From positions 6,148,729 through 6,212,728 of the forward strand of contig OZ037770.1 of NCBI GenBank assembly GCA_964035545.1: a stretch of 64,000 nt of DNA, read 5' to 3'. The notes below the pieces were generated by a model. It was given only the letters and a program-made list of their open reading frames with translations, was not told the DNA's origin and searched no databases. This DNA is from Bugula neritina (Eukaryota; Animalia; Bryozoa). The translations under genes were made by a program, and so were the position numbers. Positions 11,278-44,700 of this stretch are shown in pieces. How positions within the stretch are numbered: position 1 is the first letter of the stretch; every line of letters starts with the position of its first letter.

Positions 11278-11294
11278 GAATAGGAATACAAGAC

Positions 11295-15920: not shown

Positions 15921-16735
15921 GGCCCCTGGTATTGGGGTCGTCCTTTCTGTCCCTGGTCTTGATCAGCGCTACTCCAGCCCTGCCCCACAGGTGTTGGGGG
16001 CATCCGCAAGGCTTGACCGGGGCCAGCACCGGCCAGAATGGTTACCAATTGTCCCAGCATCTCTACCATACGGTCCACTTCGGCTTCCAGCGGGAGGGCT
16101 TCGGAGCCTGTCGTAGCCCTGGCAGCGCTGACTCCAACTACTGGTGGGTTCCTTTGTGCTCGATGCATTTGGGTAGCCAACAGGTAAGCTTCTCCAGCCT
16201 TCAGGGCATCCTCTATTCTGGTTATCCCTTTAGCTCGTAAGTGATGGTCTAGGCCCAGGTCGTTTAGGGACTGGACAAAGGCGTCATAGGTGTAACGCTC
16301 TTGGTGTTGTGCTGGCAGATCGCTATATGCAATCTGCGCCAGCTTCTTCACCGTCGCGGCATGTTCTTGCAGCGAGGTCCGCGGGGTGCGGCACAATCTC
16401 TCCAGCTTGGTCCTAGCGTCTATGACGGAGGTGCCAAAACGGGCCCGCAGCGCAGCCAGTATGCCGTCTACGTCCGTTCCCACTCCGTACGGCTTGGCTT
16501 GCTCCGTCACCGCTCTCCGCAGTTGAATAAGGGCCACTCTAGGCGGCCATTGAGCAACTTCCATTACCTCTCTAAATTCTTGTATAAATTGTTCGACATC
16601 TTCCGACCCAGTAAAGGTGGGAGCTTTCAAGCAATGTCTATAAGCTTCTTCTCCTTCACGATTCACAGGATTAACAGCATTTCTACGCTCACCTTCTACT
16701 GGGGGTGGTTGCATTCTAGCATTTTCAGTCTCCAT
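15869..16735 (-). CDS. Gypsy A gag (288 aa), no CCHC zinc knuckle
   Basis: Starts just after the PBS; LKAPTFTGSEDVEQFIQEF capsid-like motif shared with the gag ORFs at 50495 and 40221. Confidence 0.9.
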   Translation of the reverse strand: METENARMQPPPVEGERRNAVNPVNREGEEAYRHCLKAPTFTGSEDVEQFIQEFREVMEVAQWPPRVALIQLRRAVTEQAKPYGVGTDVDGILAALRARFGTSVIDARTKLERLCRTPRTSLQEHAATVKKLAQIAYSDLPAQHQERYTYDAFVQSLNDLGLDHHLRAKGITRIEDALKAGEAYLLATQMHRAQRNPPVVGVSAARATTGSEALPLEAEVDRMVEMLGQLVTILAGAGPGQALRMPPTPVGQGWSSADQDQGQKGRPQYQGPLNCHGPRTHSLPAGRN

Positions 16736-16749
16736 CTTTGATATACACT

Positions 16750-16767
16750 ATCCCACCGCTGCCACCA
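16750..16767 (-). promoter_or_regulatory. Primer binding site, tRNA-Leu (AAG/TAG type)
   Basis: TGGTGGCAGCGGTGGGAT, 1 nt after the 5' LTR, complementary to the tRNA-Leu 3' end ...AUCCCACCGCUGCCACCA. Confidence 0.9.
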
Positions 16768-16768
16768 C

Positions 16769-17072
16769 TGTTATAGTTTTCAGATTTAAGGTTGATGTGC
16801 CACCAAGAGAGTCTATTTATCACTAGAGAAACTTCACCAGTTAAGTCGAGTAGATATCGTTATATTTAATACAAGAATACATAATAAAATCCAATGTACA
16901 ACAGTAGTGATACGCACGTCTATTTAATTTACAGCACTATCCTCAACTGAGCTAGTAGCGCGAAGCGGCTACTATTACTTAACAAACAGCTTAGCTAATT
17001 GGCTAATACATTGTTCCAGGTCAATACGCAACCTTGCGTATTGTGTTGCTGGTAGCTCCACGAGCCACCACA
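16769..17072 (-). repeat. 5' LTR of Gypsy A
   Basis: TGTGGTGG...TATAACA on the - strand, followed by the PBS. Confidence 0.95.
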
Positions 17073-20000
17073 TTATTATATTAAATATAATATTTATTAT
17101 ATTATTATTGAATATATTATTTCATTAGAAAATAGGTTGCAGCTTAGCATGATTAAAATTCAGTAAAAATTAGTTTACCAACAGCAAACATGCATGCGTC
17201 TTGTCAACATTCAATTCGTAGTGCCATAGCGAAGCCAGATTATTGGTAGTACGACTACTAGAACTACTACTACTACTAGTGATGGATTACAGATCCTTGG
17301 CGATTTTAGCTGTGAGTGACCTTCACCTCACATTCTCGTCATGTGCGCGGCATAAGACTAAGTAGAGGGTATAAAGCACTGAGCTGGAAAAGAAATAATA
17401 TATTTTAATTATAGGTAATACTAATAGTAATATAATTTATGGTAATATATAGGTAATATTATTGAGTTCTTTGGTATGGAGTATAGACCTATCACTGATA
17501 GTATCAGTATCAACTACCACTTACGTACTACTTCAACTTATAACTTACCTTCAACTCAAACTGCTTGGAATCATTTGTCTTTGATCATATTGATATTCAT
17601 ATTGGCATTGTCATTGTGATTGTAATAACTATTAATATTTTTAGTTCAACATCAATGCCGAACATATTGTAATAACTAATAGTAATAAGATAATCATAAG
17701 GCTGATATATTTTGCTAATACTAATACTAATAGTAATACTAATAGTTATAGTAATTCAGTGTCACTCTCACTCTGGTGGAGTGAGACTCAGAGTTAGAGA
17801 CAGAGTGAGTCCGAGTAAGTCTGAGTGTTGGTAATAGTAATAGTCATATAAATTTAAATTATATTTACTTATTTCTAGCAATCACAATGGCAATAGTTAT
17901 AGTAACTTTCACTTACTCTTAAATCATTGAACCTGAACTAAAAGTAAAATTAAGCATTATGATTATCATTATGATTATACCTATGATTTTATTATGTTTA
18001 AATTAAAAATCAATATCATGATAATATCATAGTGATAGACATATTATTGATAAATTATAATATAAAAGTAATTTGATAAATTATACATTGATTTTGAATT
18101 AAGGTGATACTGATACTAGACCCGTACTGAAAGTGATAGTAATAGTAATAGTCATAGTCATATAAATTTAAGTTATATTTACTTATTACCGGCAATCACA
18201 ATGGCAATAGTAACTTAAACTGTAACAGTAATGGTATGGGTATGTTTGAAATTGTCACTATCAATATTGCTATGAATCAAAATATAATGCTATCATACCA
18301 ATAATTTAAAATAGTATTACAAAGCTTCAGTAGCAACTTTTACTTGTACCAGTTTGGAATTTTGAATTATACATATTCTTAGTTGAAGTCTTCAAGTTTA
18401 TTGTCAAAATGAACTTGAAATTAAAGACTTAGTAGTAAAAATTAAACTAAGACTGACTGTAAGTGACTAAAATTAAAAATAAGTAGTTTTGAATATCGAT
18501 TTAGTATTTTTCTTACTCTTTGTCTTAAAATTGACTTTTATTTTGCACCTACTCCTGGTCAATGATTCTTTTTTCTATTTATATTACTATTGCTATTAGT
18601 ATAATTGACTTAAATTTAATAATAGATATGATTATATCTTTATAAATGTGATATTTGATTTTATGAATAGTAATTCGAAAACTCTTTGGTATTATTTATT
18701 TTTGATCATTGTAGTTATTATCATTATATTTGTATAATAATTATGATTATCAAATTCAATATCGATATTTGTATTATGGTATGGATATCTGCCTCCATCC
18801 CATGTTCTGTTTTGCAGTGCCTTTTTACATTCACGTCTAGGTTCACATTGCGATGGTCATACTGATAGCACTTGGGGACAGTGATGAGCATAATGATTAT
18901 CACTAATATTAAGATTATCGTTATTAGGATTTAGAATAATTTAATAAACAAGCAACTTAAAACAAATGTTTTTACTAATATACATATTATTTACTAATAT
19001 AAATATACTACTATGAATATTATAATTATTATACTTTACAATTCAAAGTAAGATAATCATAATACGAACTGGTAAAACTAAATATAAAGTAAATGTAATA
19101 ATAATAATAGTAGTTATCCATTCCCCTTTGGTTTCACATACTAATAATTGGAAACCTCTGTCCTAATATTATTTCTATTAATATTGCTCAAAGTTTGGCC
19201 CCTATTTAATTTTATAGTTCACTCACCAGCTACATAATTTTATTAAAATACATGTGGTATTGGTTATAGTACTAGTGAAACTTGAAGTTGAATAGCATGC
19301 TTATTACTCACTGCTCTTTGCTTACATTATTAGGGTTACTCTTTAGTCTTAGAGATACCCTAACATAAACTTGAAAGCTGGAGGTAGTACTAGTCTAGTG
19401 CTGTGTTAATCCTACACTGTTGACTTATCAACACTGTGACTATAATTATGACTCCTAAGTCAAAGTCATTTTCATATAGTAGTAATCACTATGACAGACT
19501 GAAAGTCAGGAAGACTAAATATAATGGTAAAGTGTGTAAGAATAAATCATACTTAATCAATTACTTTTAGTTTTGTTACCAGTGTTGGGTCAACTTTCAG
19601 AATAAAGAATAAATATAATTATAAAGATAAATGGATAAAAATTCCAATCATGGTTTAATGTGCCTATTTTAAGCTGTTAATTTAATTACTATAATATAAG
19701 TGCTCAAAATACAACTTTTGATTTTCATAATTATGTTTTAATTTAATACAGATACCATAGTATCATATACAGTAGAATCAGTTGTATCTTATTTAATAAT
19801 GAAGTAACTTATTGGAGCTTTCACAGTTATTAATTATTTACTTGTTAGTCTTTGAACTGGGACAATGTTTGAAACTTGAAGTAGAATGAAGTTTGATTTC
19901 AGTTACCGCAATGGTATCTGCAGTCACAATAGGAATACGCATATAACTATGTTTATATTTGTGAAAAATATATAGTCAAAACTAGATAAGGTAATAGTAA

Positions 20001-20405
20001 TTATAATTGGTTTCACTTTTAATATATTCCTATAAACTGGAAAATAGACAGAAGCATTTAATCATGAAAGTAAACCTAGTGGAAGTAAATCAATTCACTA
20101 AGTATAGTAAAATATTTACTATTCAGTAAGTTTATTTACTTTAGTTAAAATTTGTACTTGATTATTTCTGTCGGTTTTTCAGTTGATTTTTCTACCTTTT
20201 GCTATAGCATATCAAACTACCACAAAGTCATGCTTCCGTATTACAATTATAAACATAGTGTTACTGTGTAATGTTATAGTAATGTAGTAGTAATATTTGG
20301 ATCATTGTAAGTATTTCTGTTGTTGTACTGATTGATAAATATTTTTTAGCTTGCATGGATATTTGCAACGATCAAGATGTCATTTGAACCTGGACTGGAA
20401 TAAAG

Positions 20406-21000
20406 ATGGCAAATCGAGAAGCTAGCTACAATTATTCTGCAGAAAGAAACTTGGTAAGCAAAAATAAGCTGCAGCATTAAGCAGTAAGCAATATGACGAT
20501 GAACTTTGCTTGATTTTGATTGACCTTAAAATATCTGGTCACCTTTCACCAACGTGGTCCTGCGCGGGTGGCGGGTGACCTTAAAATGTCTGTTGCACGT
20601 AAAATAAATTTTGTGACAGTCAAAAGTATGCTGATCTTTTTCGTATTTCAGTGCATCAGTGTTTTAGCTTAAGAGCTGAACCCAACAATTATGATCTAAA
20701 GCTGTTTTTTACTAGAAAGTGATTTTACTGTCTTTTTGATTATTCTTGGTTTTTCAGCTTGATGAATTGAATAAATGGATTTGATTTCGGGTATTATGTA
20801 ATGGATGAAAGAAATTTTTCTTAAATTTGTACTGAGCAATTTTTGCTATTGCTATGATGTTTAGTGATAAAATTGCACCCTTAATAACCCTGAAAATTAT
20901 CATTACTAGCATTTGTTTATGTTCATTTTTAGGAAATTAAAATGAAGACACAACTCACCGATGCTATCTCACTGTGCCTGCATGCAGTTTATCTAAAAAG
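20406..21000 (+). CDS. Candidate small upstream coding exons (20406-20453, 20933-21000), possibly the 5' end of the ROCO-caspase gene
   Basis: ATG...MANREASYNYSAERNL followed by GTAAGC; then tttttAG, EIKMKTQLTDAISLCLHAVYLK, GTAC. Phases (0, then 2) are compatible with the phase-2 acceptor at 26396, but the link is unproven. Confidence 0.3.
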
Positions 21001-21194
21001 GTACTCCTATTAGCTGGCTCTTGCCCAATACCTGGTTGTCTCTGTAACTATTTTTTGTTCGCAGATGAGTTTTTTGAACTTGACATTTTATTGATTTTGA
21101 AAGTTATAGTGAGCTTTGAACTTGCTAGCATCGTTTTTAAAGACTTGCTGCAGTTTTTATCAACATTTTTTAAGTCAATGGTGTTAGTCTGGAA

Positions 21195-21462
21195 GCTCTC
21201 TCACTCCTCTCTCTGTCTCTTTCTCCCACACCTTCCACTCAACCTCTCTCTCTTTCTCTCCCTCTCTCCCACCCTTCCTCTCTCCCACCCTCCCTCTCTC
21301 CCACCCTCTGTCTCTCCCACCTTCTCTCTCTCCTAACCTTTCTCTCCTCTCTTTTCCACTATCTCTCTGACTCTCTCCCTTTTTCTCTTCTACCCATCTC
21401 TCTTCCATCCTCTCTCCTAACCTTTCTCTCCCACCCCCCTCTCCCACTCTCTTTCTCTCTCT
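21195..21462. repeat. CT-rich polypyrimidine low-complexity tract
   Basis: Degenerate (CT)n/CTCTCCC repeats over about 270 bp. Confidence 0.9.
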
Positions 21463-24400
21463 AGTTTGCATGGCTTTACCCAATTTTGGTTTATTTTTTA
21501 TTTTGTTTCAGAGTATCCAAATGGAAAGCTAAAATTTATTTAATATATATTATACCAAATTGAGCTTTACATATAATATCAAATAAATGCTGTGTTTTGT
21601 TAAAATCAATGTTTGCAACTTTGTAGTATATTCAAATTCATAATTTATTTGTAGAGTCACACAACAAGACACTACTCTGACACACTCACAAGTTGCCACT
21701 GATCCAGCAGTATAGATGATTGTTTTCTCCACTGGCTATGCTGTCACGCTTTACTGATGTGGTGTTTGAAACAAACCAATTGTTTGCCTACGCAGACTAG
21801 GGTGAGAAAAAAAGTGAAAAATGAAAGCTGTTTTTAATACCAACTACAATTAGTTTTTATTGAATGAAAAACAAAGTGAAATCATTAGTTATCAGTTAAA
21901 TGACTAAATCACTGTTTATAAAGATGAAACACAAATAATCTTATAATATGCTAATGAAATTTGGCTTTCAAATAGCTTTTTTCTGTATATTTGTCGAGGA
22001 AGTTTATCTTCAACAAAACTTCGTAGCTGTTGAATATGTGGAGAGTATTTTATGTTGCATAAATTTATAGAGTAAAAGGTTCTAATCAAAATTTTTCAAC
22101 TTGGCTCATCTACGGTTTAAAAGTGTGAGTCACCCTTCACACTAGAGTTTTATAAAGTTTTAATGAATGTGCAGTATTTCATAAAATATTGTGTGTCTCG
22201 TAAATTTAGCTATTTATACCTTTTCAGTGAGATTGGAGTAAACACACCTCAAAATTCACATCTGGTATCACATTGATTTATCGCAAGTCAAAGTACACCT
22301 ACTATATACTAACTCGTCCTTCCTTAATACCTGCTTGCTTTTGCACTTCTATAACTCATTTCATATACCTAACTTTCTCTTGCAGATGAATTACATCTTT
22401 TAATTTGTAAAAGCCTTAAATATCATGAAATTAATGAGGTTTAAACCGTGGCCACACTAACTATTGATGCGTTTATTGATGGGTCAAATTACACGAAAAT
22501 ATTGTCTCTTTCTTTTTAGTTTCACCTAAAGTATTACATACTATTGATGGAGGCTTTGCTGAAGTTTTTGGGTGATGATTTGTCAATAATTTTCCAGAGA
22601 AGATGATGCCACGATGGCTGGCATCATTATGCAATTTCCAAATTTCTTTCGGCTTTGCTCTAGTGAAAATGTTGGAAAACAATCAACAAAAAGGTTTGTA
22701 CCATAAACAAAGTTATTGTGTGCATGTTGCCAAAGCATAAAGTGTGCTGGACATTTTTAAGTTTCTGTTGAGTTGCGTTTATGCTTTTCCTGCATGAAAA
22801 AAGTTCCAGTTTCAGGTAATATCACTAGCGGAGTGCCCACCTATATTTTAAATCATATTGATGCATAAGTTCTTTTTGTAATATTAAATGTATAACTTGC
22901 TTAATTGCTATTTAATGCCCTTTGAAGTTTCCAACTGTAATTAATTAGTTGATTTGGCAGCATGGTATATCGATGATTGATGAAGGCAGCCGATATAATT
23001 ATAAGCATAAATATCTATATCTACATGAAGATGTCACTCCCAATGATTGTTATTCTGAAATCAGCTGATTAAGTTATCACAAACTAGACATTTTGACCAG
23101 CGGCTTTTACAATGCAACTCGGTGAAATTTCAGACCTAGATTAATTGAATTTCTTACTGAAAATCGTGAAGGTATTAAAGTTTAAAGTGAAAGTTTAAAG
23201 GGTCATCTCTCTGCGAATTCTAATAGCATGGTGCCAATTAGACTTGAAAAAAATTCAAGGCACTATAAAGCACTAAGCCCATTCTTACAAGTAGTTTCAA
23301 AGTGCACTGGAATTTCAGTTTACTTGTCATTGTATAGAATCCTGATCTACACTATATAGCATTCACTATTGCCTGCTTCTTCTAAGCATCTATAATGTAT
23401 TAACTACAGTTTGCTTTGAGAAGTGAATTTCTACTTGGTATTTTTTCCTTATCGTTCTGTTGTTTGCCAGTAGTCTTAATTTAATGGATTTTCCCTTTTC
23501 AAAAGTGGTTGTGACAATCAAACACATCATGCAGCCTGCAACTACACAATCAGTCAGTAATTTCTTCCATTAAAGTAGCTCTTCTGGTTACTCTTGCTCA
23601 CCTAAAAGCCTGAGCCTCATTCAAATTGCAAGTTTTTAGAGTTGTTAATTTTTCATGCAGTCTTTCATTTTTTTTGGTTAGGCACAAAATTAGTATTCAC
23701 TAGACCTAATATTTCATCTGCATGTATGCCTATTGTTTGTTCATTAAAGAAAAACCTCTGCTGAATATTGAACTAATAATGAAAATGAATTCCCTAAACT
23801 AAAAGTAGCAGTGTGATTTTGGTATTACAATTAGTTGTTAGCATAGAGTCAAGTTATTGACAGGAATTTTCAAATTGAAATGAATGAATTTCATTGTAAG
23901 TCAGCAAGATTTAGTCTAAGTAAACATAGCATTACATCGTGTTTTATTTAGCATTTGTAGAAGGCAGCATATATTTAAAGGATTATTGTAAACTTAAATG
24001 TAATTTTAAGTACTTTCCATGTTTGTTATTGTAGATGGTCTTGTTCTTTGGAATGGATGTGACAACTCCTTGTGTCAAACTTAACTGATTGACTACTGAA
24101 TCCCAATCATATGTTTTGCCAAAAAATGTGAAAATGGAGTGCATGTCTACTTTATTTGAGAAAATATTAAAAATACTTTTGAAACTTCATCTAGCCAAAC
24201 AATACAACAGTTTCATTTTATTAAAAAATATCATTTGCCCAAAATGTATTATGTAATCGAACAATTTCTAGAAAAAAAGTGCTTTCCTCCAGTTTTGCTA
24301 ATGAATTACATATTTCATTACATGCTTGTCTTTATAATTTTATTAATTGTTTTTTCTGGTGAGTCAATTAAAGTCAATTCAACCTAGAAAAGTCTGAATT

Positions 24401-25534
24401 TCAGACTTAATTTCAAGCTAGAATATTCACATTTTTAGGTCTGCGTTTGCAAACATTGTTGTGTTACTTTACTTTTATATTTTTTGAAATAAATATTTTT
24501 TTAGCTTGTGCCTATTCATGGTTAGAATAGTATAATAATATTTAACTTTTCTTCAATTTTAATAGATGAAAATGTTGATCAGTTGGAGTATTCAGTTTAG
24601 CTGAATTTTACTTGCTTCTGCCAGAACAATCTTTTGGAGTTGTCTGCCCTTTCTTTAGGTAATATTTTGACCTATGGTAAACGCAATAATTATAACTTTT
24701 TAAAGATGCTTGTGAACCTAACAATATAGCATAACTATCAAACCACATTATTTATTCAATATATGCATAAAATTTAGCCGATAATCTGCCACCCAATGAG
24801 CTCGAAAAGATATTAGAATTCTAGCTCAGTGCTGCCATCAATGTAGATATTTATAATGATATAAAGCCAAAACTCATTATTTATAATGATATAAAGCCAA
24901 AACTCATTTTTTCATGAAATTATCTAACCATTCCTGACAAAAAATAGAGATAATAACTCCAAAGTTGGTCAGTTGAAACCACAGCAATAATACTTTCATC
25001 TTTATAATTGTCCGGTTTAATTTTATACCAAGCCCCAATAAGTACATATCACTATGACAACACAGCCTAAGCACCTCCAATGCAAGAAATTTAGTATTGT
25101 GGTGCTACAAATCCTCCAGTTACAAATGAGTAGAGCTTTCATGATTATTGGTCTACCATAATGTTTATTTAGTTTTAAGGACTAGCATAGATGCTATTAT
25201 ATGTGGGAGGTATTTGAAAAGCTTCCAACTCCATCTTCAACTACGGGCTATTATAATTATGCCGATAAACGAGATACTACACTCAGACTGCCCTGTTATA
25301 GTACTATGATTGGCTACTGCAAAATTTTTGCCGATAGACAACATTTAATTATCATGTAATGTATCTCGTATTGGTACATAAGTGTTATGTCTGAGGACGA
25401 GATACTGTGAAATTATGCCCTGCACAATTAATATGACAGTACCCTCACCTATTGCCTTTATGTCTTGCTTGGGTAGTGGGTGACTGCCAGAGGCCTAGCT
25501 TAAATAAACTTTTCTACATAACTCTATCCTGAGG

Positions 25535-26190
25535 GTCTTCTTCGTTGAGAAAACAGAATTGGTTATTTTTCCTGATTGCGTCCTGCTGACTACGCTATGA
25601 GCATCTCGATTTCTCTTTACTCTAACTCTCATCACATGTACTCTTCTCATGTCATCTCTATTCTTTCTTTTATATATATGTGCAAATACTACCTAATGCT
25701 CTCGCTGGTTTAGTCATCTTTAAGATTGATTCTCGCTTACGCTACGCTAAAACTTTCAGCAAGGTAATCGGTCAATGCAATGGCCAAGGTTTCCGCTCGA
25801 TACAGTAGAACTGGTAATATTACTGTCTTGTGAATAATCATCTTTAGTTTCTTTCGAACATTATTGTCAGCTCTCTTCATTTCTCCTTTATTGTCTCATA
25901 TTACCCCAGTCAGTTTTCTCCATTTATCCTAGGTGTTGCCAATGCGCACCTGTACCTCTACATTTTGTTTCCTGGTGAATTGTATTCTCCAGGTATTTGA
26001 ATGTGGTTTTTGAAAAAAAGTTCAATGTTCAGATCTATTGTATTCCATTATTCTCGTGTCAATGCAGATTTTTCTGGTAATAGGCACACAGTTTTATACC
26101 TGCTAACTTTTAGGCCGGCACCCTCTAATATCATTTTCCAGTCTTCCAATACTTATTCTATGTTTTCTCTACTCTCAACACACAACACTA
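25535..26190 (-). mobile_element. Degraded RTE-clade LINE 3' fragment
   Basis: Manual - strand translation gives LEDWKMILEGAGLKVSRYKTVCL, FKYL, KWRKLTGVI and KTVILPVLLYRAETL, with stops; ends in a short GAAGAAGA tail. Confidence 0.75.
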
Positions 26191-26395
26191 ATTTACATAT
26201 AGTATATATATAATATGATGATTGTGGCTTATATGTACTTGTTTTCTGTAGCTACCATAAGGCTGATTGCTAGATGGTTAAAAGTGTTTCATATGAGCTT
26301 ACTATAGTCACTATCACACAATACTATTTTGCCTAATTATTGTATACCAACTACCTCTAGTTTATGCTGGTAATAGAAATATAATATTTTATTAG

Positions 26396-29300
26396 GATGC
26401 AGAGTCTGCAGGAGCTACAGACACTAGACATAAGTGGAAATAATTTCACCAGTCTACCATCTTCAGTGTGCAGATTGAGTAATCTGCACACACTGAATCT
26501 TTCCCTCAACAAATTCATGACATCCTTGAACCCAGAGATGCTACAGCTAACACGTCTTCACAGACTGCATACAGATGGTTGCAATGCTCTTACATCTCCT
26601 CCACCAGAAGTTCGTTGGAGAGGATTAAATGCTGTGCGACAATACTACACAGATTTGGCTAAGGGCACTGGTAGAAACTTGCCATTTGCTACAATAGCAG
26701 TGTTAGGGAACACCATGGCAGGTAAAACCAGTCTAATCAAAACATTACAGAGCACTGACAGGAAGAGAGTTCTGACTAAGAGAAGTTCGAATGCAGAGTA
26801 TGATGAGACTACAAAGGTGTTTAATGTGGAAGAGGTGGAGGTGGATGGTACAACTCTTCGTCTCATAGATATGGGAGGCCAGGAGGTCTACCATATCACA
26901 TACCATTTGACACTGAGACAGAATTGTGTACCAGTTATTGTAGTCAACATGGAGCAGTATGACCAGATTTCGAAAGCATCTACAGACAGAGAGGCTGTGA
27001 GAAAGTTGGCTTTTGACTTCATGTCTCACCTCTATCTCGCTCATCCATCTCTTGGCCCACCTAAACTTGTCTTCACACACAAAGATAAGTTTCAAAATCA
27101 GAAGTGTCAACAAATAAAGGACAACTTTCTTAGAGTATCTGATGAACTGTGCAAAGAAATTCTTGATGAAGAGAAAAGCTCAGATGGGGAATTTGTGAAA
27201 ATTCAGCATTTCAATTCATGGAATGGAAAAGTTTTTGTCAGTGAAGATATATATCAGATCGGAAAGAAACACGACTATGCTGATTACGATTTGATAAAAA
27301 GCTCCCTTCTAGAGAGCAGTCAGCATTTTGTTAAGCCTTTGCCTTTGATATGGGAAAAAGTGAATGAAAAAGTTTTGTCTTTACCTGGAGCACTTTGCTC
27401 CTTTTGGTTTATTCTGCTTGTGTTAAAAAAAGACGGCTTTGAACTGAAGCCAAGCCAGCTAGATACTATTCTCACATACATGCATGACTGCGGCAAAGTA
27501 TTGTGGTACAAGAATATTGATACACTCAGGCCATACGTATTTCACAAGATCACAGAAGTAACCAAACTGTTGTGTGTTTTGTATCACCATGACCCAAACA
27601 TTTGGCAGAGTCGAGTTGATCAGTTCAAATCATATCATGCCATAGAAGGAGTCAGGATTGAAAAGCAAGACTTTGAAAAATCTGTTAATTGCTTCAAGAC
27701 TAGTGGCATGATGATGCAACCTCTTCTAACATATTTGATTGCGGAAGAAACTTCCTTCAAGAGTTCTGGTGATGTTGAAATTGCTGTTTCATTGCTTAAA
27801 ACATTTCGGTTGCTGTATGGTCCTTTGGAAAATGATGCTAAGGAATCATACTACATTGTCCCACAGTTTGCCAAGGAGCTATATAGTACTTCCTACACAT
27901 CATCGAAAGACCTGTTACTTGTTGCTGAGACACAGTTTAATGGTCTGGCATTACCACAGCATGTCTACCACCAAATGACTGTGGGTTTGCTAGAACTGTT
28001 TCCAGAGGAGTTGGCTGTAAGAAGGGTAAAGAAAAATGGAGTAAATGTTTACCAAGATCAAATATACACACAGCTGATACATGACTGCAAAGCAAGAAGA
28101 GTTTTACTCTATGTGTCATCTGATGCTGCTCACATTTCCAAAATGTGGGAGAAACTCATTTCAGCCAACAACAACATCCTCAGACATGTCATAGAAACTT
28201 GGACTGCTAGTCGACCAGTCACTGCCTGCTTCTGTGCTCACTGTGTCATGCTTGGGGTTTCTTGCCCTGAAAAAATAATTCGTCCTAATTGGTGTTTTCG
28301 CTCCTTAAGCAACCCATCACCAGATGTAAAGAAGTGTAGTGGATCTTCAACAACGCTGTGTAACAACGAGGAAGTGCCCAGTGCTTTAACCTACCCATGT
28401 ATGTTAATTCATAAATATTTTTACTGAAACTTTCTTTTTTTATAGAACATAATGCATTTTCAAATGTTGAAAGTACACAAGGTCAGTTTGAGTTGTTAGT
28501 TTAAGTTACGAACTCCTAATTTGAATTCATCATAACTAGATTAAACACCAAACATTGCGTAATTGTGTTTCTGAATATTTCATCAGTTTAAACTATTCAA
28601 TTAAAACTTTTTTTCTTCTAATATATACGTAATATCCTTTAGTTGTGTCGATATTAGGATTTGGTAGTAAAACCTATCTCGTTATAGTTATAGTCAAAGT
28701 TATGAGGTAATTCATCTAATCAGTTTTATTCAGGTGAGGCGTTGTCAAAAACAGAAATTGGTATGTTGGAGACGCTGTTGGCAAAGCTCAAACTACGAAG
28801 AATAGAGCAGAAGGACTTAACTGGTAAACTTCTACAGTATAGTTAATTTTTAGCTTCTTTTTTCTGGATAGAGTTATGTTTGAGAGAAAAAAACAACTTG
28901 CAGAAGCCGTTGACTAATTTCAAACAGCTGTATAAACAGTTTAGAAATTCTGATAATGTAAATTTCTTTGACTCGTTTAGCAAAGCTATTTCCGGCAAAA
29001 TCTAATGTTTATTTGTTTGAAGTGAACAAATATCCTATGTTTATCAAATACTGACAAAAAAATCTTGTTGCTGTAGACGATGATGATCTAAGTGATCTCT
29101 CTGATGATGATGAAGTTTTACAGACTTGTGAAGAGAAGGACAAGGATATAAAGTTGATAGAGCTCAACTTAAAGCCAACCAGCAATCCAAGGATTAAACT
29201 CCTCTTTTCAAATACTGTCAAGGTTATTACATTGTTTATCGGCTGTTCTTAGCCATTTTGGTTTGGACAATCAATACACTATAGTGGTATAATTATTCCT

Positions 29301-31457
29301 TTATTCCCACAGCTTGATAATAAGAATACCTGAATGTAGAATACGTGCTTTCTTTACAAAGTATAAGCTTTATTGTAATATAATTTGATAATTTTGTGCT
29401 TTGGCGAAATTGGCTCATAACATTTATTTAGTGAAATTTCATGTCACCACTGTACATGGTATTCTAAACATTCTTGCCTCCAGGTGTTCAGTATGACCAG
29501 AAACAGAGGAAAAGCTCTGATCATAAACAACAAGAATTTTGTTGAAAGACCAGACTTATGCAGGGAAGGTTCAGATGCTGATGTTGAAAACATGTCTGTC
29601 ATGTTGAAATCTCTCAAGTTTGATGTTGAGACACACACAGACCTGACAGCAGAGGTATAATATTTTAGAATGACAGCAATAGTAGTGAACTATATACACG
29701 GTAGCATGCTATTTCTTTAGAGAAGTAAAAATGCTTTTTGTGTGAAACTGTATTCAAACTTTTATCGTCAAGCTTATTCTTCAGTATTTGCTTAACTTAC
29801 ACACTGTTCTAATATTACTTAAGGTTTGCTAAAATGGGTGCACATTTTGGCATACTTGCTTGTGAGTCAATATTTATAGTTATCAATAGTCATACTAATA
29901 GAAGTGAATGCTCTCATTTACCTGTATGGTTATTATTACTTACACAGCTCAACTTGGCTAACGTATTAGCTTTTCAACTGAAAATACCTATTACTATTGA
30001 AACAAGACTTAGCAACCTCCTAATATTGTCAAGTTGCAGTTATGCTATAAATGGCTGATGGGCCAGGATTATATAAAAAAATGCAGCACTTTTTAGAGAT
30101 ATAATAAAATTTTATAAAATTAATGTAGGAAATGCTGTCTGCTGTGAAGTCCGAGATAAAAAATGAAAGAAACAACGGCTTGGGCTGTCACATGCTGGTA
30201 GTCATGAGTCACGGTGAAGAAGATAACTGCATCTATGGAACTGACCTTGAGAAGGTCAATCTTACAGACTTGTATGATTTACTCGCTCCTCTAAGTCTAA
30301 AGCGTAAACCTACAGTTGTCATCCTAGAAGCTTGCAGTGGAGGTAATTACAGCGTTTTATAGAAAATTTTCATTTTTAGTTGAGTTGTGGAAGTAATACA
30401 AAGATCCTTGAAAATCGCTCTCTGTATTGATTGAATTCCTTTTTTACTCAAGATGCAAGCTTAAAAATTTTTGTTGCAGCAAACATTGAGGTGAATCCAG
30501 AGGGATCTGGTCTTGCAGCAGCTCAAGAAGAAGAAACTGAAGCTGTCTCTTCTACACATTCTGAAGCTGATGATGATATTGTATATCCTGAAACACCCAT
30601 TGTAATAAGACCCATCAGACCTGTCTTACCACCAGAATATAGAGTAGAAGAGCGGTGGACCAGACTGGATGTTGATAATCTTCTTGTTCTAAAGAGTAAC
30701 GTCTGCAGTACGTATACTAAATAGTGATTGGCTAGTTTTACATGTGCACAGTTGCAGTTATTTAGAAAATTGTCTCTCCTTAATTCAATCTTGTAAACTT
30801 GTCTTTAAAAAGTATATCAAACAAACACTGTTAAAAATACTGAGCTTGCTTTCATTACACCATAATTTTGGCTGCATTTAATTTTATTATAGCATCAAAG
30901 AGACATCCTGAATATGGATCTCTTATGATTAGAGCTCTTGTATCTTCAATCTACAAACATGCCTGTCACCGTGATCTCTACACCATTTTCATGCAGGTAA
31001 GTTTAGAATGATAATTTTGCTGATTTCTGGTTTCATACAAAAATATTTCTTTTATTTCAGCTGTTTATTATTCATATTTTTTGATTGACATTTTTCTATC
31101 AGCCTGTTGTGAAGGTTTACAGACTGTCTTAGTCTCACTGCAATGATATATCTTATATTTTTGACTGTAGCAGACAGTTCTCAAGATTTCACTGCTTAGA
31201 TTTGATACAAATAAGACGGTATATTCCAGCAGCTTAGAGTTGTAAATATTTATCTCATCTGGAAGTATATTCGTACACAATCTTACTAGTCATTACTTAC
31301 TCTACAGGTACAGACTAAAGTAGTGAAGAAGCTCTATGCAGATGAAGATTCAGAGAGAAGCAGAAATTTGGTTGTAATCTGGAAGACTCTTCCTTACCGT
31401 AAAAGACTTTACCTGTTTCCTGGCTTGGATGGGTTGGATGAAGAAGAAAAACCCTAA
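26396..31457 (+). CDS. LRR-ROC-COR-caspase fusion (ROCO-family GTPase with C-terminal peptidase C14 domain), at least 1034 aa
   Basis: Exons 26396-28398, 28734-28823, 29077-29222, 29484-29654, 30129-30342, 30480-30707, 30893-30996, 31308-31457, all GT-AG and phase-compatible, no internal stop. LRRs (LQTLDISGNNFTSLPSSV), LTSPPPEV cap, G1 GNTMAGKTS, G3 DMGGQEVY, G4 THKD, COR (PLIWEKV; YMHDCGKVLWY). Caspase motifs RGKALIINNKNF, REGSDAD, VMSHG, KPTVVILEACSG, SKRHPEYGSLMIRAL, KRLYLFPG. Confidence 0.9.
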
Positions 31458-32023
31458 GTCAGTAGAGAGGATCATTCCTAAGAATTATCATATGATGTAA
31501 CTCGTAGCATTTACCCGCTTTGGGTATCCAGCATGATCTGTTGAATTGAACAAACAATTAGTTTAAGTTAATGAATTAGGAAGAGTTATTCTATTAGTTT
31601 AATTGACAAGAGATTTCCACTCTTATACATACTTATGTATAATTATATGTTTTTGGTAATCTGACAGTTGCTAAGACTGTCTATCTGGTGGATTCTTTAT
31701 CTACTATTTATATATCTTATAGTGTTGTGGACTAGTATATCATACTGATTTGTATATTGGCTGATTTGTTGTTGAGTGTGCTTTAATTACTTTGTACTGG
31801 ATATTTTTTCGCTGCTTTTTTATGCCCCATAAAGCTTTGACAATGTTTATCTTTGCACTTGCTTTAATCAATTAAAAATTTATACTTAATAATATTTACA
31901 TGCATTAATATCACATATTTTGCTGTTTTTTTATTCAAGTGTTATTTCATATTTCTTTGATAAATTTTATTTGAACTACACATTTTTGAGAGTCAATTTT
32001 TGTATGGGTTGTAGTAGTTTTAC

Positions 32024-32958: not shown

Positions 32959-35900
32959 TGTAGTATAATGTTGTTTACAATTGCTGAGTTATTTATATAC
33001 TTAACAGTAATATGCTATTAATACATATGATGTCGTAGATTTGTGATTCATTCCTATGTTATATATATATACCTTACACTTATGATCAGCAGCAGTTCTT
33101 TCTATGCTGTCAAGCTGCATACTTTATACCTTACAATAATAAACGTCACGATACATTATTCCAATGGTCTCATCTTAATTATTACCCACGCAAACGTACA
33201 ACAAACAAGAAACATTACATGGTGTCAGAAGTGTGTGACCTGAAAGAAGAATAATGGCTACCAGAGCACCGTCATCATTTGACTTCACTAACCCAAGTGG
33301 ATGGGGTGAGTGGATACGAAGATATAGCAGATATCACAATGTAACAAAAATGTCAAAAGAAGCTGACGACTTACAAATAGACAGTCTATTATATACGATG
33401 GGAGAAGCAGCCGAGGACATTTTTATACAGCTACCACTCACAAATGATGACAGAAAGAAATATGATAAGGTAAAGGAAGCATTTGACACATATTTCAAAC
33501 CTAGGACAAACAAGGCACATCACATTGTGCAGTTCAATGGAAGAACTCAGGAACCTAATGAAAACAATGAGGAGTATATCAGGGCACTATACTCTTTAGC
33601 ACAACATTGCGAATTTGGCAATGCGGTAAATGATAACATTAAATATAGATTGCTGACAGGGATGAAAGACAAGGCTCTGTCAATTGAGCTACAGCAACTG
33701 ACAGAAGATCAGTTAACGCTAGAAAACGTAACACAACGCATGAGAGCCAAGGAGATAATACAGAGAAACCTTGCGAGTGCTGCACCAGAGCAACCAGCAG
33801 ATGTAGATGCAATAAGGAAAAGAGATTACTCAAACAATTTTCAGCCAAAAAAACATACAATGGATATTATTAACAACTGCCATAGCTGCGGATCTAGTCA
33901 CAGAAGGAGACACTGCCCAGCGTATGGAAAATCCTGTAACAAATGTGGTAAATCTAATCACTTTGCTAAGGTATGTAGATCTAAGGCTATAACGAAATCT
34001 ACAACTAATGCTGTACAAGTACCAGATGCTACTACAGATGTCAATGAGGAACCATGCATGTTTAATGTAAGATTATGTAGCAATGTTAAGCTTAATGAAT
34101 GCAATTCTTCAGTTTGGTTTGAAAATTTTGTTTTTGGTAAAACTAAGGTCGCCATGAAAGTTGATACAGGTGCACAAGTTAATGTTTTGACAAGAGATAT
34201 TTTTGAAAATCTTGATGTAAGTAGGGAACTTAGAAAAGCTGGTACAAAGCTCACAGGCTACACTGGTCATGTTATTCCAGTGGATGGAGTCGTAGAACTG
34301 CCATTCAGTTTTAGGGGTAAAACCTACAAATCTGAGTTCTATGTAACCACTGCTAAAAACACACCTCTTTTGGGCTTGCCCACCGTCAAGGAGCTTGGTC
34401 TAATAGGAATAGATCAGGTAGAGCAAGTAGATACTGATAGCAGTAAGTTGATAGTTGAAGAATTCAAGGATGTTTTTGAGGGGTTTGGAAAATTAGACAT
34501 AGAACACCACATTACACTAAGACCTGAGTATGTAATGTTAGACCTGTTCCCATAAATGTAAAACCAAAGCTAAAAGCAGAGCTTGATAGGCTTGAGAAAT
34601 TAGAAATTATTCAAAAATGCAATGAGCCTTCAGATTGGGTTTCACCCATTGTAGTAGCGGAAAAGCCTAACAACCAAATAAGGCTTTGCTTAGATCCTAG
34701 GCTGTTGAACAAAGAGATCATGAGAGAGCACTATAAGTTGCCTACAACTACAGAGATATACAGCAGGATAGGCCAGTCAAAATTCTTTAGTACTCTAGAT
34801 GCTACAAATGGTTTTCACCAGATACCACTTGATGTAGAAAGTTGTAAATTGACAACATTTATTACACCCTATGGGCGTTACAACTACAAACGACTGCCGT
34901 TCGGGTTAAATTCAAGTGCTGAGGTTTTTCATAAAACAATGTGTCAAAAACTAGGTGATATAGAGGGAATTGAAATCTATATTGATGATTTGCTAATCCA
35001 TGCACCTACTAAAGAGATTCATGACCGGAGGCTTAGGGAAGTTTTGTTGAGATGCCGTGAGATAAATCTGAAATTAAACCCTGAGAAGTGTGCTATAGGT
35101 AGACAAGTAGTTAACTTTCTAGGCCATGAAATTTCAGGTGATGGAATTTTGCCAAAAAGAAATAGGGCTAAAGCAATTCAGGAAATGCTGACTCCCACAT
35201 GCAAAAATGATGTTCAACGATTTCTTGGGTTTGTTAATTATATGGGAAAATTCTGCCCTGATTTGGCAAATGAAACACAACCATTGCGACAGCTGTTGAA
35301 AAAGAATACAACTTTTATTTGGGAAAAGGCACACAATAATGCATTTGTTAAAATTAAGCAACTTGTCTCAAATGCACCACTTTTGAAGCATTTTAATTCT
35401 GATGAAGAAATAACACTGCAAGTGGATGCTAGTTCATTTAGCTTGGGGGCAGTTTTAATGCAAAAAGGCCAACCAGTGGAATTTGCAGCCAAGTCATTAA
35501 CTGACACTCAGAAGCGCTATGCACAGATAGAAAAGGAATTGTTAGCAGTGTTGTTTGGCTGTAGGAAGTTTCATTATTATGTCTATGGAGGTAGCAATTT
35601 TTTTGTGCAAACTGACCACAAGCCTTTACTAGGCGTAGTAGAGAAAAACATAGAGGACACAAATCCTAGAATTAGGAGAATGCTGCTTGAGTTAATGTCC
35701 TACGATTTCAAATTAGTGTACAAGAAAGGTAATGAAATGTACATAGCTGATATGCTGAGTAGAGCATCATACCCTGACATAGATACATCTGTAAATGTTG
35801 CTGAATTTGATCCTATGAACAAGTTGCCTGAAATGATGTTTTGTTCTGACCAAGCTAAAGCAGAATACAAACAAGCAGTTTTGAGCGACAGAGAGCTACA

Positions 35901-37635
35901 GGCACTCAAACTATTGGTAATTAATGGATGGCCGCCATATAGGAAATCGTGCAGCTTTGTTGGAAGAAAATATTGGCCATGGCGTAATGAAATTGGAATT
36001 TGTGATGAATTTCTATTTGTTGGTTCAAAGCTGATAGTACCAATGTCAAAACAAACAGAAATTTTGCAAAAATTACATAAGTCACATCAAGGCATTGTGA
36101 AAACAAAGGCATTGGCAAAAACAGTGGTGTTTTGGCCTGGAATAAACAATCAAATTGAGGAAATGATTCAGTCATGCGTGCAATGTATAGGGAAAACATT
36201 GAGCAGCAATGTAGGCAGCCAATGATGGCTAGTGAGATACCTAAATATCCTTTTCATACAGTAGCAGCTGACTTGTTTTCTTTGGACGGAAATGATTTCA
36301 TGTTAATTGTTGATTATTTTAGCAAGTGGTTAATTATTGAGCCATTAAAGACGACAACAAGCTCATCAGTGATTCAGTGTTTTGAGAAAACATTTGCTGA
36401 TTTTGGGGTTGCATGTGTACTTAGAAGTGATAATGGGCCCCAGTTTACTAGTCAACAATTCAAAATAATTTTGAATGAACAAGGCATTGAGCATTTGACA
36501 TCTTCACCAGGGTATCCACAAAGTAATGGGTGTGCAGAAAGGTACGTTAGGACTGCAAAAGCTTTACTAAAAAAATGCAAAGCTGAAGGCAAAACATTTT
36601 ATGGTGGTTTGAGAAATTTGAGAAACACTCCAATAAGTGATAAAATACCATCGCCAGCTGTACTACTACAAGGTAGAGTGCTGCCAGACACTCTTCCTAG
36701 AGATTTGAAAACGCTTTTTCCAAATAGCTATGACAAACAGATAATTCAAAATGAATTTGAGATTGTCAAATCTACGCAGAAATTAAATTATGACAGACAT
36801 GCTAAACCTGAACTTTCAGTTTTAAAACCTGGTCAGAGAGTTCGTGCAAAAATTAATGATAAGTGGATTTTGGGAAAAATTCAGAAACAAGACCTGACTG
36901 GTCCAAGGTCATACTGGGTAGTAACCGACGAGAATAAATTGTACTGTAGAACTAGAGCGGATATAACTTTAACAAATGAGCCTCAACAAATACCTACTCC
37001 TGTATTGCCCCCTATGCACAGATCTATCCCTGCCATACCTGGCCCTCCTATAGATCAAGCTGATGATTCAAACAGTTCACAATCTGAAAATAGTTCGAAT
37101 GTAAATCCTCCAGGTGCATATAGAACTCAGAGAGGAAGGTTAGTTAGAAAACCAGAGAGATTAGGTTATGACATGTAGAATTAACAATAACATGCCATGG
37201 GTAGTAGTTGAGGTTTGCACCAGCACCTAGCAATTAATAGCATGCAGAGTTTGTATTCATTTATTATGTCATTATAATCATTAGTGAGAATTAGTTTAGT
37301 TGCATGCCAACTTTTCATCATGCTTATACTGTTGTTTTAGGCTTTTCTATTATAAAACATTTAGAAAGGGGAGATGTAGTATAATGTTGTTTACAATTGC
37401 TGAGTTATTTGTATACTTAACAGTAATATGCTATTAATACATATGATGTCGTAGATTTGTGATTCATTCCTATGTTATATATATATACCTTACACTTATG
37501 ATCAGCAGCAGTTCTTTCTATGCTGTCAAGCTGCATACTTTATACCTTACAATAATAAACGTCACGATACATTATTCCAATGGTCTCATCTTAATTATTA
37601 CCCACGCAAACGTACAACAAACAAGAAACATTACA
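32959..37635 (+). mobile_element. Full-length Ty3/Gypsy element D (Mag-like), recent insertion
   Basis: 261-bp LTRs at 32959-33219 and 37375-37635 with 1 difference seen; 5-bp TSD GTTAT; PBS TGGTGTCAGAAGT 33220-33232 (tRNA-Leu CAA type); PPT AGAAAGGGGAGA 37363-37374. Confidence 0.97.
33254..37178 (+). CDS. Gypsy D gag-pol, broken into three ORFs (33254-34555, 34705-36225, 36174-37178)
   Basis: Twin knuckle CHSCGSSH...CPAYGKSCNKCGKSNHFAKVC, protease VDTGA, RT YIDD, RNase H VDASS, integrase HHCC and SDNGPQF. Frameshifts near 34530 and 36190. Confidence 0.92.
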
Positions 37636-41720: not shown

Positions 41721-44700
41721 TCAGACACCTTCCAGAGATACTTCTACAAGAGAGTATGAGTATATATTACAGTGTGAAATGTACTTTACAATATGATATG
41801 TATATTATATAGATAGTGTATACTTAATATCATATATACTATATACTTAGTATCATATATACTATATACTTAGTATCATATGTACTGTATACTTAGTATC
41901 ATATATACTATATACTTAGTATCATATATACTGTATACTTAGTATCATATATACTGTATACTTAGTATCATATATACTGTATACTTAGTATCATATATAC
42001 TGTATAGTTAGTATTATATATCCTATATACTTAGTATCATATATACTGCATACATAGTATCATATATACTGTATACTTAATATCATATATACTGTATACT
42101 TAGTATCATATATACTGTATACATAGCATTACATCAGAGGCTGATATATATCTTACCATACCTGAAACTTGAGGCGGATAATGTAGTCCAAGGTCTAATT
42201 GAACACCTTCAGTAGGAAGGGCAGGCTCATGAACCTCCTCCATTTTACCAAATTCAGCTGGAGAGATGTGGGCTACGCTGCCATCTAAAGTATTATTACA
42301 TAAAAATTTCCTAGTTCATGATCTACTAATAAGAGTTGTGTCCCTTCAGCAGTTACATACTTCAACCTTAATATCAGGGAGCAGTCTCACTAAACGCCTG
42401 GCCTCACGATCGTGAGAATCATACGAATTTGTCTATTTGAAACAAAAACATCCGTACGAGAAAATCTGAGGGAATTCAAACGAAATCGTCCTCGTTGGGT
42501 GTACACACCGATGACTAGGGACGAAAAATCACAATCGACGATAAGTACCACTTGATTGTTCAATAGAATTTTAGCAACAGTAATTATTTCATTTCTACCA
42601 CTTTTCTCTATTTGGCAAATTTCTGCTGTTTTTACCTTGCGCAAGACTCATTCGCAGACTATGTCTATATATGTCTATGTGCAATATGTCTATCACCAAA
42701 TTGAAAAGGTGTATAGCATTGTTGCATATTGCATGTAAAACAGTCAAACTTTAAATTTCAGTTAAAGCATGTACCTGCTAACGGGGCACAACTCTTGATT
42801 GTAAATTGACATCGCAAACATAAGAAGAGAGTATATCACATATAAGTACTTTCTTGACTGTTAAATGGATCAGTTGATGGATGTGTTATATATATATTCA
42901 GATAACTGATAGAGTGGTCAAGATATAAACAGTAGGAAGAAGAAGTAATATCAGACCAGCAGATAATGTAATGCAGTAAACCAAAACCAATTCTCAATAT
43001 ATTATCTAAGATAATTACCAGATACTTGTTGGGGGGTTTCCTCCACATCCCCATCTTCTGACTTCTCAATTGCAACCTCGACTACCGTCTCTCCAGTATC
43101 TTGTATGCTGTTGTGTAACATATTAGAGTTGAGTCTTGCTAACAGAGTTGCTGTCTCAGGAGTCAGAGTTGAGCTGGTGTGGATGCTGCCATCTGACAGC
43201 TGTGTCTTCACCCTTGAGATCATGTGACCTGGGAGAGAAATCATGCGACCTGGTAGAGAGCGATCATGTGACCTGGGAAAGGGAAATCAAGTGACTGATT
43301 GATACTAACCTGACTCTTGACCTTCATGAGCGAGTGTTACTGTCACAGTCTCTAGATGGGGGCCTATATGTGACGCCCAGTCTTCAGTCCATACTCGATC
43401 CTGCTCTAATGCTAAAGTATCCACACTGCCCTACGAAGTAATTTATATACATAGTTACTCTGTGTGCATATAAAAACAACTTCAAAAAACAGACCACCAG
43501 CCAACCACAAGAAATCTTCCAACCTAATTGCCAATCGCAGGAGGTTTATTATTTATGTTCCAATCGCAGAGAAAAATTTAATGACGGCACAAAGTGAACA
43601 TAGTCTCATAGCTGTCAATGCGACATGCATGAAATAGTATAAAGAAGTAGCCAATCATGAGAGGTCATATTATTTACTTTCCAATCACAGAAACTTTTAC
43701 AATTTCACAAACAACACCACATGTATAGCAGTACCTCTTTGAGAGGCAGCACACCACTATCAATATCACGGAGAGCTGTGTGGATGTGATTCTTCAGATC
43801 GCTGACAGTCGGGAAGAAACTCAAGTCATGTCTAACTGGAGGCTCCTCATTACTGAACAATTCTTTCTCTACGTATTTCCTGTATGAGAATATCAGGTGG
43901 TATGAGTGTGGCTCAGTAGCTTTGATATTTTGATCTTATAGATAGTAGGCTATACAAGTGTTAAATAGCCAGCTAGCTTTTTAACACTTTCAAAATAGTC
44001 TAACGTCATCAAAATAAAACACAACAAATATGTTTAAAACAATTGTGTCAAAAACCAATAACACTTAAATTTTTATAATACAAAATGTCCTGCAAATTAT
44101 TCTACTAGAAGTATTTCTGAGACTAAATTGTTTCCCTAATACTGATAGAAAATGTTCATAAAGTTTATGGAGAACTTGATGGCAAGATTTCATGCTGAAG
44201 TATCAGTGGTTATATTTTTATCAGGTTTAAAGCCACATGACTATTCTAAGGAGTTTGAGCCGCAGTGCTGACAGTCACTCACACAGGACAAAAACTGATA
44301 CAGACTTATTTTATTGACAGACATGATTCTGTCTTGAGAACTGTTTGCTCACCTCAGCATCTTCCTAACAGTAGTCACATGGTGTATACCAGAGGAGACA
44401 ATATCTCTAATCTTATTGGCTACAGGAGGAGCGAGTCTAGTATTTCCTCTTTCTAAAATACAAAAGAAAAATATGAGAATACATTCGGGAGGTTTACCAT
44501 CCAAGGTGAGTTGAAAGAAACAGCAAGAAAGCGACAGGATTTATCTACAAACTCTAAACAGTGGGAGTAGGAAGTTCTGCACCAACCTCAGCCCCACCCA
44601 CATCTGAGCGGTTGACGAAAATTGTTCTAAGAGGACTGCTGGAACAGCAGAAACTTCATATTTATTACAGAACAAACAAACACAGCCTTGACAACTACTT

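Follow-up and report, generated by a model that had tools for sequence, protein, structure and literature searches.

An LRR-Roc-COR GTPase joined to a caspase in a gene of the bryozoan Bugula neritina

A locus in a 64,000-nucleotide stretch of Bugula neritina DNA (contig OZ037770.1; hereafter the window) raises the question whether a single animal gene encodes both a ROCO GTPase and a caspase, and what such a protein might do. In NLR inflammasomes and the Apaf-1 apoptosome, a sensor and a nucleotide switch activate a caspase by induced proximity. For LRRK2, the way in which Roc-COR governs the enzyme attached to it is still an open question (PMC11052575), and a natural ROCO whose output is a protease would make the nucleotide and oligomer switch simple to read. 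A GTPase-based counterpart to NLR-caspase systems that had evolved repeatedly and expanded in a colonial animal would, moreover, add a class of invertebrate immune receptors.

Gene structure and domain order

Eight exons on the forward strand (26396-31457, Table 1) join in phase, as had been proposed in a sequence-only reading of this DNA, and every motif named in that reading was found at its place. Each of the seven introns has GT-AG ends; their phases are 1, 1, 0, 0, 1, 1 and 0. The frame read from ATG 26397 extends over 3105 nt, or 1034 stop-free codons (1034 aa), with no internal stop, frameshift or broken splice site. Intron positions agree with those of the Watersipora RefSeq models XP_067947674.1 and P0052. 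The spliced model was searched one exon at a time, and its exons were kept as separate rows in the alignment. Its domain order is LRRs, Roc, COR, acidic linker, caspase p20 and caspase p10. The LRRs within the model number only about three.

Table 1. Positions in the window of the exons, conserved motifs and neighbouring element of the gene.
Feature	Position	Strand	Content	Evidence
Decayed non-LTR retrotransposon fragment	25600..26190 (approximate)	-	occupies the spot of the paralogs' nearest LRR-module exon	translation
Exon 1	26396..28398	+	internal-type, behind AG acceptor; last ~3 LRRs (aa 1-60), LRR-Roc linker, Roc (aa ~95-310), COR-A/COR-B (aa ~315-667)	Pfam and AF2
Roc G1 P-loop	26706..26732	+	GNTMAGKTS (aa 104-112)	G104, G109 and K110 each in 81/82 homologues
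Switch-I Thr139 (G2)	26811..26813	+		invariant, 82 rows
G3	26868..26882	+	DMGGQ	D158, G160 and G161 in at least 80/82 rows
G4	27075..27086	+	THKD	T, H and D each in 80/82 rows
COR-B end	28233..28398	+	conserved C613-x-H615-C616, C655, junction Cys668	C613 and C616 invariant, C655 in 81/82 rows
Exon 2	28734..28823	+	post-COR helix; phase 1-1	RNA depth; joint to exon 3 in 3 runs; counterpart exon in Watersipora models
Exon 3	29077..29222	+	acidic, probably flexible caspase tether	joints on both sides; matching region pLDDT <50 in Watersipora model
Exon 4	29484..29654	+	first part of caspase p20; S1 Arg773 (29562-29564)	Pfam E 9e-11; PDB caspases
Exon 5	30129..30342	+	p20 with His831 (30210-30212), Glu870 (30327-30329; usually Gln), Cys872 (30333-30335)	Pfam
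Exon 6	30480..30707	+	acidic inter-subunit linker and p10 start	joints
Exon 7	30893..30996	+	p10 with second S1 Arg954 (30901-30903)	weak Pfam; matches p10 of Watersipora models
Exon 8	31308..31457	+	p10 C-terminal strand (LYLFPG) and stop codon	motif and frame

The Roc-COR module

On exon 1, Pfam detected Roc (E 1.6e-7), LRR and, below the cut-off, a weak COR-A (E 0.003). The AF2 model of this exon (pLDDT 90.6) matched LRRK1 (8e05, E 1.7e-24) and the Chlorobium Roco protein (6hlu) over about 600-750 aligned columns, and also matched an isolated COR domain (3dpt, E 7e-11). A COR domain follows directly behind Roc, and Roc itself, above the Pfam cut-off, carries the G1-G4 motifs expected of a ROCO protein. 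Motif conservation was scored over 82 homologue rows; the window matched the consensus in 76 of the 77 columns that are highly conserved. dN/dS was 0.10-0.15 in Roc, about 0.2 in COR and 0.21-0.29 in the caspase core (about 0.1-0.3 overall). The Cys/His cluster at the COR-B end may form a zinc site.

The 5' end of this copy

In the paralog loci L001, L002 and L009, LRR modules are encoded by symmetric 144-nt exons of variable number. No such exon was found in the 26 kb upstream of the Bugula neritina gene by HMM, by blastn or with the paralogs' LRR exons, and the LRR sensor earlier ascribed to this gene is therefore missing over that distance. A leave-one-locus-out HMM used as positive control recovered the LRR-module exons in the paralog loci with E 1e-22 to 1e-33. 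Neither tblastn with Watersipora N-termini nor a splice-site scan of 17100-26390 revealed an upstream exon. ATG 26397 is probably not the true start, because it lies directly behind a splice acceptor; it is in frame and could begin a short form.

These findings could mean that a birth-and-death family has left here a non-functional duplicate with a recently truncated 5' end; its conservation would then reflect recent ancestry. The surroundings of the gene fit such a history: homology with L010 stops at 26352, the retrotransposon fragment, which we take to be RTE-like, adjoins exon 1, young LTR elements lie on both flanks, and a DNA run contains sibling copies about 97% alike. Set against this are the undamaged frame and splice sites, the single departure from the consensus, the short form that the in-frame ATG could start, and a 26.5-kb intron among the LRR exons of a Watersipora relative, by which the LRR exons could sit beyond the window. 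A non-functional duplicate is a serious possibility, albeit one that we do not expect to be correct. As to truncation itself, the balance tips slightly towards a copy that has lost its 5' end; otherwise distant LRR exons lie outside the window. With its 5' end apparently missing, this copy is ill suited to represent the family in bench work, and full-length paralogs or Watersipora models are preferable.

The caspase module

Peptidase_C14 was detected by Pfam in exons 4, 5 and 7 (E 9e-11, 1e-6 and 0.07), and Pfam and PDB matches, exon by exon, recovered a caspase fold with p20, linker and p10. The full-domain fold was computed on the Watersipora RefSeq homologue, the model of which matched caspases with a target-normalised TM of about 0.8. 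The domain has diverged to about 25% identity with solved caspases, and the His-Cys catalytic dyad is present, as SHG and ACSG align with CED-3. Exon 7 has a dN/dS of 0.06-0.19, and exon 6, at 0.92 versus L010, is unconstrained; the linker in exon 6 contains candidate self-cleavage sites. The gene encodes a full caspase that retains its catalytic dyad and is under purifying selection. Pfam, folds and conserved motifs uphold the initial assignment of the locus to the ROCO proteins with an attached caspase, and the caspase looks intact.

The S1 pocket retains both arginines, and its Gln is replaced by Glu (EACSG), so that the canonical Arg-Gln-Arg arrangement (QACxG) is not found. This Glu, shared within a subclade, stands ahead of the catalytic Ala-Cys in the window and in L010, L002 and L009; L001 has His in its place, and Watersipora and amphioxus have Gln. 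L002 additionally lacks the p10 S1 arginine. Because the S1 Gln is Glu, canonical Asp specificity should not be assumed for this predicted caspase-fold protease, and the change could weaken Asp cleavage. Together with the divergence of the domain, this variation would suit a family of non-lethal signalling or processing proteases, or partly of decoys, with an altered specificity that serves a specific substrate or self cut instead of cell killing. We consider this unlikely, as the window retains the dyad and both S1 arginines, and in conflict systems a caspase effector usually goes with cell death (PMC8195603).

Transcript support for the fusion

Contigs from three probable RNA runs (three studies) were compared with a DNA-like run. 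The joints 28823/29077 and 29222/29484, which had been singled out for checking, were present as GT-AG joints in contigs of all three RNA runs. In the joint table, 29654/30129 and 30342/30480 were each found in two RNA runs and 30707/30893 in one, and 30996/31308 was visible only as loose-end letters and approximate joints. Among the joints listed, the DNA-like run has none of the downstream exon joints. The RNA contigs are mostly 90-98% alike and may derive from sibling copies or alleles.

The joint from COR to the linker, 28398/28734, was not found among the contig joints listed and is supported indirectly. At the 28398 donor two contigs lose their alignment to the genome yet continue beyond it, and RNA depth is zero or nearly so in the bin of intron 1 (335 nt). 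Watersipora RefSeq models share this intron, codon and phase included, and the same exon order was found in the paralog loci L001, L002, L009, L010, L005 and L006. The GTPase-caspase fusion in the Bugula neritina gene is confirmed. Two adjacent genes, a ROCO ending at the 28427 stop, to which the open reading frame continues past the donor, and a separate caspase gene, would fit the absence of this joint from those listed and recall several Watersipora ROCO models that end without a caspase, but are very improbable in view of these contigs, the shared intron and exon order, and an intron with neither room nor evidence for a promoter.

A bryozoan family

The gene has dozens of same-source paralogs, probably from Bugula, and at least 10 further Watersipora models carry a caspase. 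Its Roc-COR was placed in a bryozoan clade (support 100/100) that shares a conserved exon structure. The Watersipora subatra RefSeq models named 'MFHAS1 homolog' (XP_067947674.1, XP_067948342.1 and others) are alike in family, architecture and intron positions; they differ in their automatic names, which make no mention of a caspase, in QACSG instead of EACSG and in their full LRR arrays. Orthology to MFHAS1 is contradicted by the caspase and by the separate, long-branched clade, in a tree that contained no vertebrate MFHAS1. A NACHT or NB-ARC ATPase was not matched in the gene by Pfam or fold. Two candidate relatives, P0268 (LRRC8-like plus caspase) and P0255 (ankyrin plus caspase), proved to be unrelated fusions. 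Searching the ESM Atlas by features and fold gave generic ROCO clusters only, all below 0.9, with no Roc-COR-caspase cluster among them, and a blank there is uninformative. A literature search, with most subscription papers outside its reach, returned nothing on bryozoan ROCOs and no functional work on any ROCO-caspase.

Comparison with known systems

Although no characterised animal example had been known to the sequence-only reading, computational work has already recorded the LRR-Roc-COR-caspase architecture in amphioxus and in bacteria. The text of Zhang et al. 2008 (PMC2575513) describes amphioxus 'LRRs-caspase' hybrids and proposes them as a direct link from pathogen recognition to apoptosis; Roc-COR is not mentioned there. 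The amphioxus LRR-Roc-COR-caspase models (e.g. C3XQ16, C3ZI91, C3YRK1) are probably these genes. They share the domain order and four identical caspase intron positions with the bryozoan gene, but carry LRR-Roc-COR on one exon and QACRG. In one clade of amphioxus ROCOs the C-terminal domain is a caspase, an OTU or a conflict-type GT4 domain, much as in bacterial AP-GTPase systems (PMC8195603), and in the tree the caspase-bearing members nest among those with GT4 or OTU, away from the bryozoan clade. Because of these separate clades, the two fusions may be independent; an AU test against joining the caspase-bearing clades gave p=0.011, a value driven by one long branch, and the group tested had been named after a first tree.

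The bacterial AP-GTPase (Roco) counter-invader systems of Kaur et al. 2021 (PMC8195603) follow the same plan of LRR, AP-GTPase, COR and variable effector, with caspase among the effectors (e.g. OQX07365.1). They are prokaryotic and predicted only, and their Roc-COR forms a separate clade in trees, whereas the animal caspase is of the metazoan p20/p10 type and has introns. LRRK1/LRRK2, MFHAS1, DAPK1 and Chlorobium Roco have the LRR-Roc-COR core and fold in common with the bryozoan gene, but differ in their output (kinase or nothing), few copies and a structural-alignment identity of about 15%. NLRs and Apaf-1 share the sensor-switch-caspase logic, yet use a non-homologous switch, a STAND ATPase and not a Roc GTPase, and engage the caspase in trans via death-fold adaptors. 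Brown algal ROCOs with shuffled LRR exons have been proposed as immune receptors (PMC11378527), and LRR-Roc-COR-TIR proteins are reported from invertebrates (PMC5094078, PMC9334734); such candidates resemble the bryozoan family in expanded repertoires, exon-modular LRRs and immune effector fusions, but the relevant passages describe no caspase effector.

Proposed function

We favour, with reasonable though not strong confidence, a family of one-chain LRR-Roc-COR-caspase proteins that has expanded in the bryozoan lineage. Its members would most likely be intracellular receptors, for immunity or for self/non-self recognition, and would set off proteolysis and cell death. Binding of a foreign or damage ligand by the LRR array would release auto-inhibition, the nucleotide cycle of Roc would then alter the oligomeric state of COR, and the flexibly tethered caspases would meet, dimerise like initiator caspases and cut their own acidic linker. 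In Chlorobium CtRoco, the best-studied Roco protein, the nucleotide-free form is dimeric and GTP makes it monomeric (PMC11052575), and a simple model of GTP, dimer and death therefore has the wrong polarity; we infer both the sensing step and the polarity of the switch. The original notion of a sensor, switch and protease in one chain fits the expansion of the family, the LRR modules encoded as exons and the exchange of effectors among amphioxus relatives, and falls short for this copy, in which the sensor array is missing within 26 kb.

A wider, speculative and rather doubtful extension is that much of the intracellular surveillance for pathogens or allorecognition in bryozoans is carried by a large family of single-chain caspases under GTPase control. 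This family would have been assembled without common origin with its amphioxus and bacterial counterparts and would owe its diversity to the shuffling of LRR exons. The subclade of this gene, with its remodelled S1 pocket, would then have a non-canonical specificity, and LRR-less copies would be constitutive or helper partners.

Gene structure and splicing

The gene lies at 26396-31457 on the forward strand and comprises eight exons; its seven introns are all GT-AG and measure 137-474 nt. The sequence-only reading of eight exons in one stop-free frame holds: the intron phases chain, and the final TAA is the first in-frame stop after ATG 26397, giving 1034 aa. The region 25700-31650 was compared with contigs from one DNA-like run and from three probable RNA runs, each of a different study. 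The RNA identity of the three is the tool's guess, but their contigs cover the exons and leave the intron bins empty or nearly so. Among the junctions which that reading had singled out for an RNA check, 28823/29077 and 29222/29484 were both present as GT-AG joints in all three probable RNA runs. Joints 29654/30129 and 30342/30480 were found in two such runs each and 30707/30893 in one, and none of these was listed for the DNA-like run. The COR-to-linker joint 28398/28734, also singled out, was absent among the joints listed for the four runs, but one contig aligned up to exactly 28398 and continued for 64 more letters, and intron 1 depth was 0, 2 and 0 in the probable RNA runs versus 379 in DNA. 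A second contig ends at 28400, where the first two letters of exon 2 would fit equally well. Since most RNA-type contigs were 90-98% alike to the gene, they demonstrate splicing for the family or an allele rather than transcription of this copy. Independent support for the COR-to-linker splice comes from intron positions in two Watersipora subatra models, P0119 (XP_067947674.1) and P0052: their post-COR intron splits, in phase 1, the Cys codon that is split here too, and their caspase introns occupy matching positions.

Domain architecture and caspase residues

Pfam domains were assigned exon by exon. Exon 1 matched LRR, Roc (E 1.6e-7) and, weakly, COR-A, and exons 4, 5 and 7 matched Peptidase_C14. 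The AlphaFold model of exon 1 (pLDDT 90.6, pTM 0.88) resembles LRRK1, Chlorobium Roco and LRRK2 over its full length, and also an isolated COR domain. The proposed LRR-Roc-COR-caspase fusion is judged real. A Watersipora homologue, modelled from Roc to caspase, is predicted to fold into this module followed by a complete caspase (target-normalised TM ~0.8), with low confidence in the acidic tether between COR and caspase. Roc G1-G4 residues are near-invariant among 82 homologues. At the end of COR-B (28233-28398) a CxHC...C...C cluster is invariant and possibly a zinc site; the CxHC motif is visible in amphioxus protein P0208 too.

The caspase retains His831, Cys872, Arg773 and Arg954. The glutamine of the QACxG motif around the catalytic Cys is replaced by glutamate, as in the paralog loci L010, L002 and L009, and is retained in Watersipora and amphioxus. 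This glutamine helps to hold the P1 aspartate in caspases, and arginine-specific clan CD proteases carry an acidic residue at its position. As two arginines remain in the S1 pocket, the effect of the exchange is uncertain. The S1 pocket also varies among paralogs: L001 reads HACSG (L001:5549-5770), and L002 has lost its p10 arginine (L002:13959-14060).

A bryozoan family under selection

The nearest relatives of the protein are dozens of JGI metagenome proteins (45-77% identity), and the named matches are from the bryozoan Watersipora (30-40%). The downstream exon order is repeated in L001, L002, L009 and L010, and at least ten Watersipora models of the family carry the caspase. No published account of a bryozoan LRR-Roc-COR-caspase family was found in the literature. 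Pairwise dN/dS against the paralogs came to 0.10-0.15 in Roc, ~0.2 in COR and 0.21-0.29 in the caspase core; in the inter-subunit linker it reached 0.9. The gene departs from the consensus in 1 of 77 conserved columns.

It is doubtful that this copy is complete. In the paralogs, one to five or more symmetric 144-nt exons with two LRRs apiece lie within the few kb that precede the large exon. An HMM of these exons recovered those of the paralogs at E 1e-22 to 1e-33 in leave-one-locus-out searches, and Watersipora LRR exons as well, and found none within the 26 kb available upstream of the gene. Exon 1 is preceded by a paralog-like acceptor; similarity to the nearest paralog breaks off 45 nt upstream, where a decayed non-LTR retrotransposon fragment adjoins. 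Yet in a Watersipora relative one intron among the LRR exons measures 26.5 kb. The copy is accordingly a 5'-truncated one, a short form that begins at ATG 26397, or one whose remaining exons lie beyond the window.

Origin of the fusion and precedents

A dozen Branchiostoma models carry LRR-Roc-COR-caspase. In Roc-COR trees, where several ENA and Logan rows marked 'bryo' are without confirmed taxon, bryozoan-type and amphioxus proteins form separate, well-supported clades, and the amphioxus caspase-bearing ROCOs nest among relatives with GT4 or OTU ends. A single caspase-bearing clade gave p-AU 0.011, a value that hinges on one long unidentified branch. Both groups have caspase intron positions in common, but vertebrate caspase-2 and caspase-9 have them too, so that sharing them is no proof of one fusion event. 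These sequence comparisons somewhat favour independent fusions. C-terminal OTU or conflict-type GT4 domains occur in Branchiostoma ROCOs P0163, P0160, P0193, P0194, P0222, P0264 and P0265; two Branchiostoma models carry both caspase and GT4, and in P0268 (ENA contig) an LRRC8-like membrane/LRR protein is fused to a caspase.

Amphioxus 'LRRs-caspase' genes were described as recognition-to-apoptosis shortcuts without mention of Roc-COR (Zhang et al., 2008; PMC2575513); they could not be matched to the models considered here. Bacterial LRR-AP-GTPase-COR proteins carry at least 24 effectors including caspase, and the exact LRR-AP-GTPase-COR-caspase architecture is listed (Kaur et al., 2021; PMC8195603). 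Further papers describe ROCO-TIR and ROCO-death/CARD fusions in other invertebrates (PMC5094078, PMC9334734, PMC11378527). The earlier impression was that no characterised animal example was known; no functional test of any ROCO-caspase was found in the literature, but the architecture has a computational precedent.

Proposed mechanism

The analysis shows the anatomy, the selection, the expansion and, in relatives, the swapping of effectors. Most likely, the family members are intracellular receptors in which the variable LRR array would gate a Roc-COR switch that draws tethered caspases together; that the family senses a ligand and causes cell death, and with which polarity it switches, is inferred. 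CtRoco, the Chlorobium protein, is dimeric without nucleotide, monomeric with GTP and mixed with GDP, while LRRK2 dimerises via COR-B and is auto-inhibited by its LRR (PMC11052575). Activation could accordingly follow hydrolysis and re-dimerisation, or release from a restraining dimer and assembly of a higher oligomer.

Neighbouring repeats

Repeats and other features neighbouring the gene
Feature	Position	Strand	Details
Gypsy-type LTR element	9635-17068	-	LTRs ~99% alike; gag, pol and third ORF all open
Third ORF downstream of pol	10204-11277	-	Cys/His motifs
Related Gypsy-type copy	50159-57302	+	LTRs 93% alike
Third ORF downstream of pol	55993-56805	+	Cys/His motifs
Second LTR retrotransposon	32959-37635	+	261-nt terminal repeats identical
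Repeat of at least 2 kb	7-2095 and 44009-46003		two copies, 91-95% alike
Fragmented ORFs	59858-61797	+	
Tandem array	41740-42199		period 23 nt

The pol regions of the two Gypsy-type elements are 95% alike, and a Pfam search of their third ORFs gave zero matches. The two-copy repeat is probably a DNA transposon. The fragmented ORFs, which lack a Pfam match, resemble a tyrosine-recombinase-like transposon gene. The second LTR retrotransposon, a very recent insertion, sits 1.5 kb 3' of the gene, which is flanked on both sides by young LTR elements.
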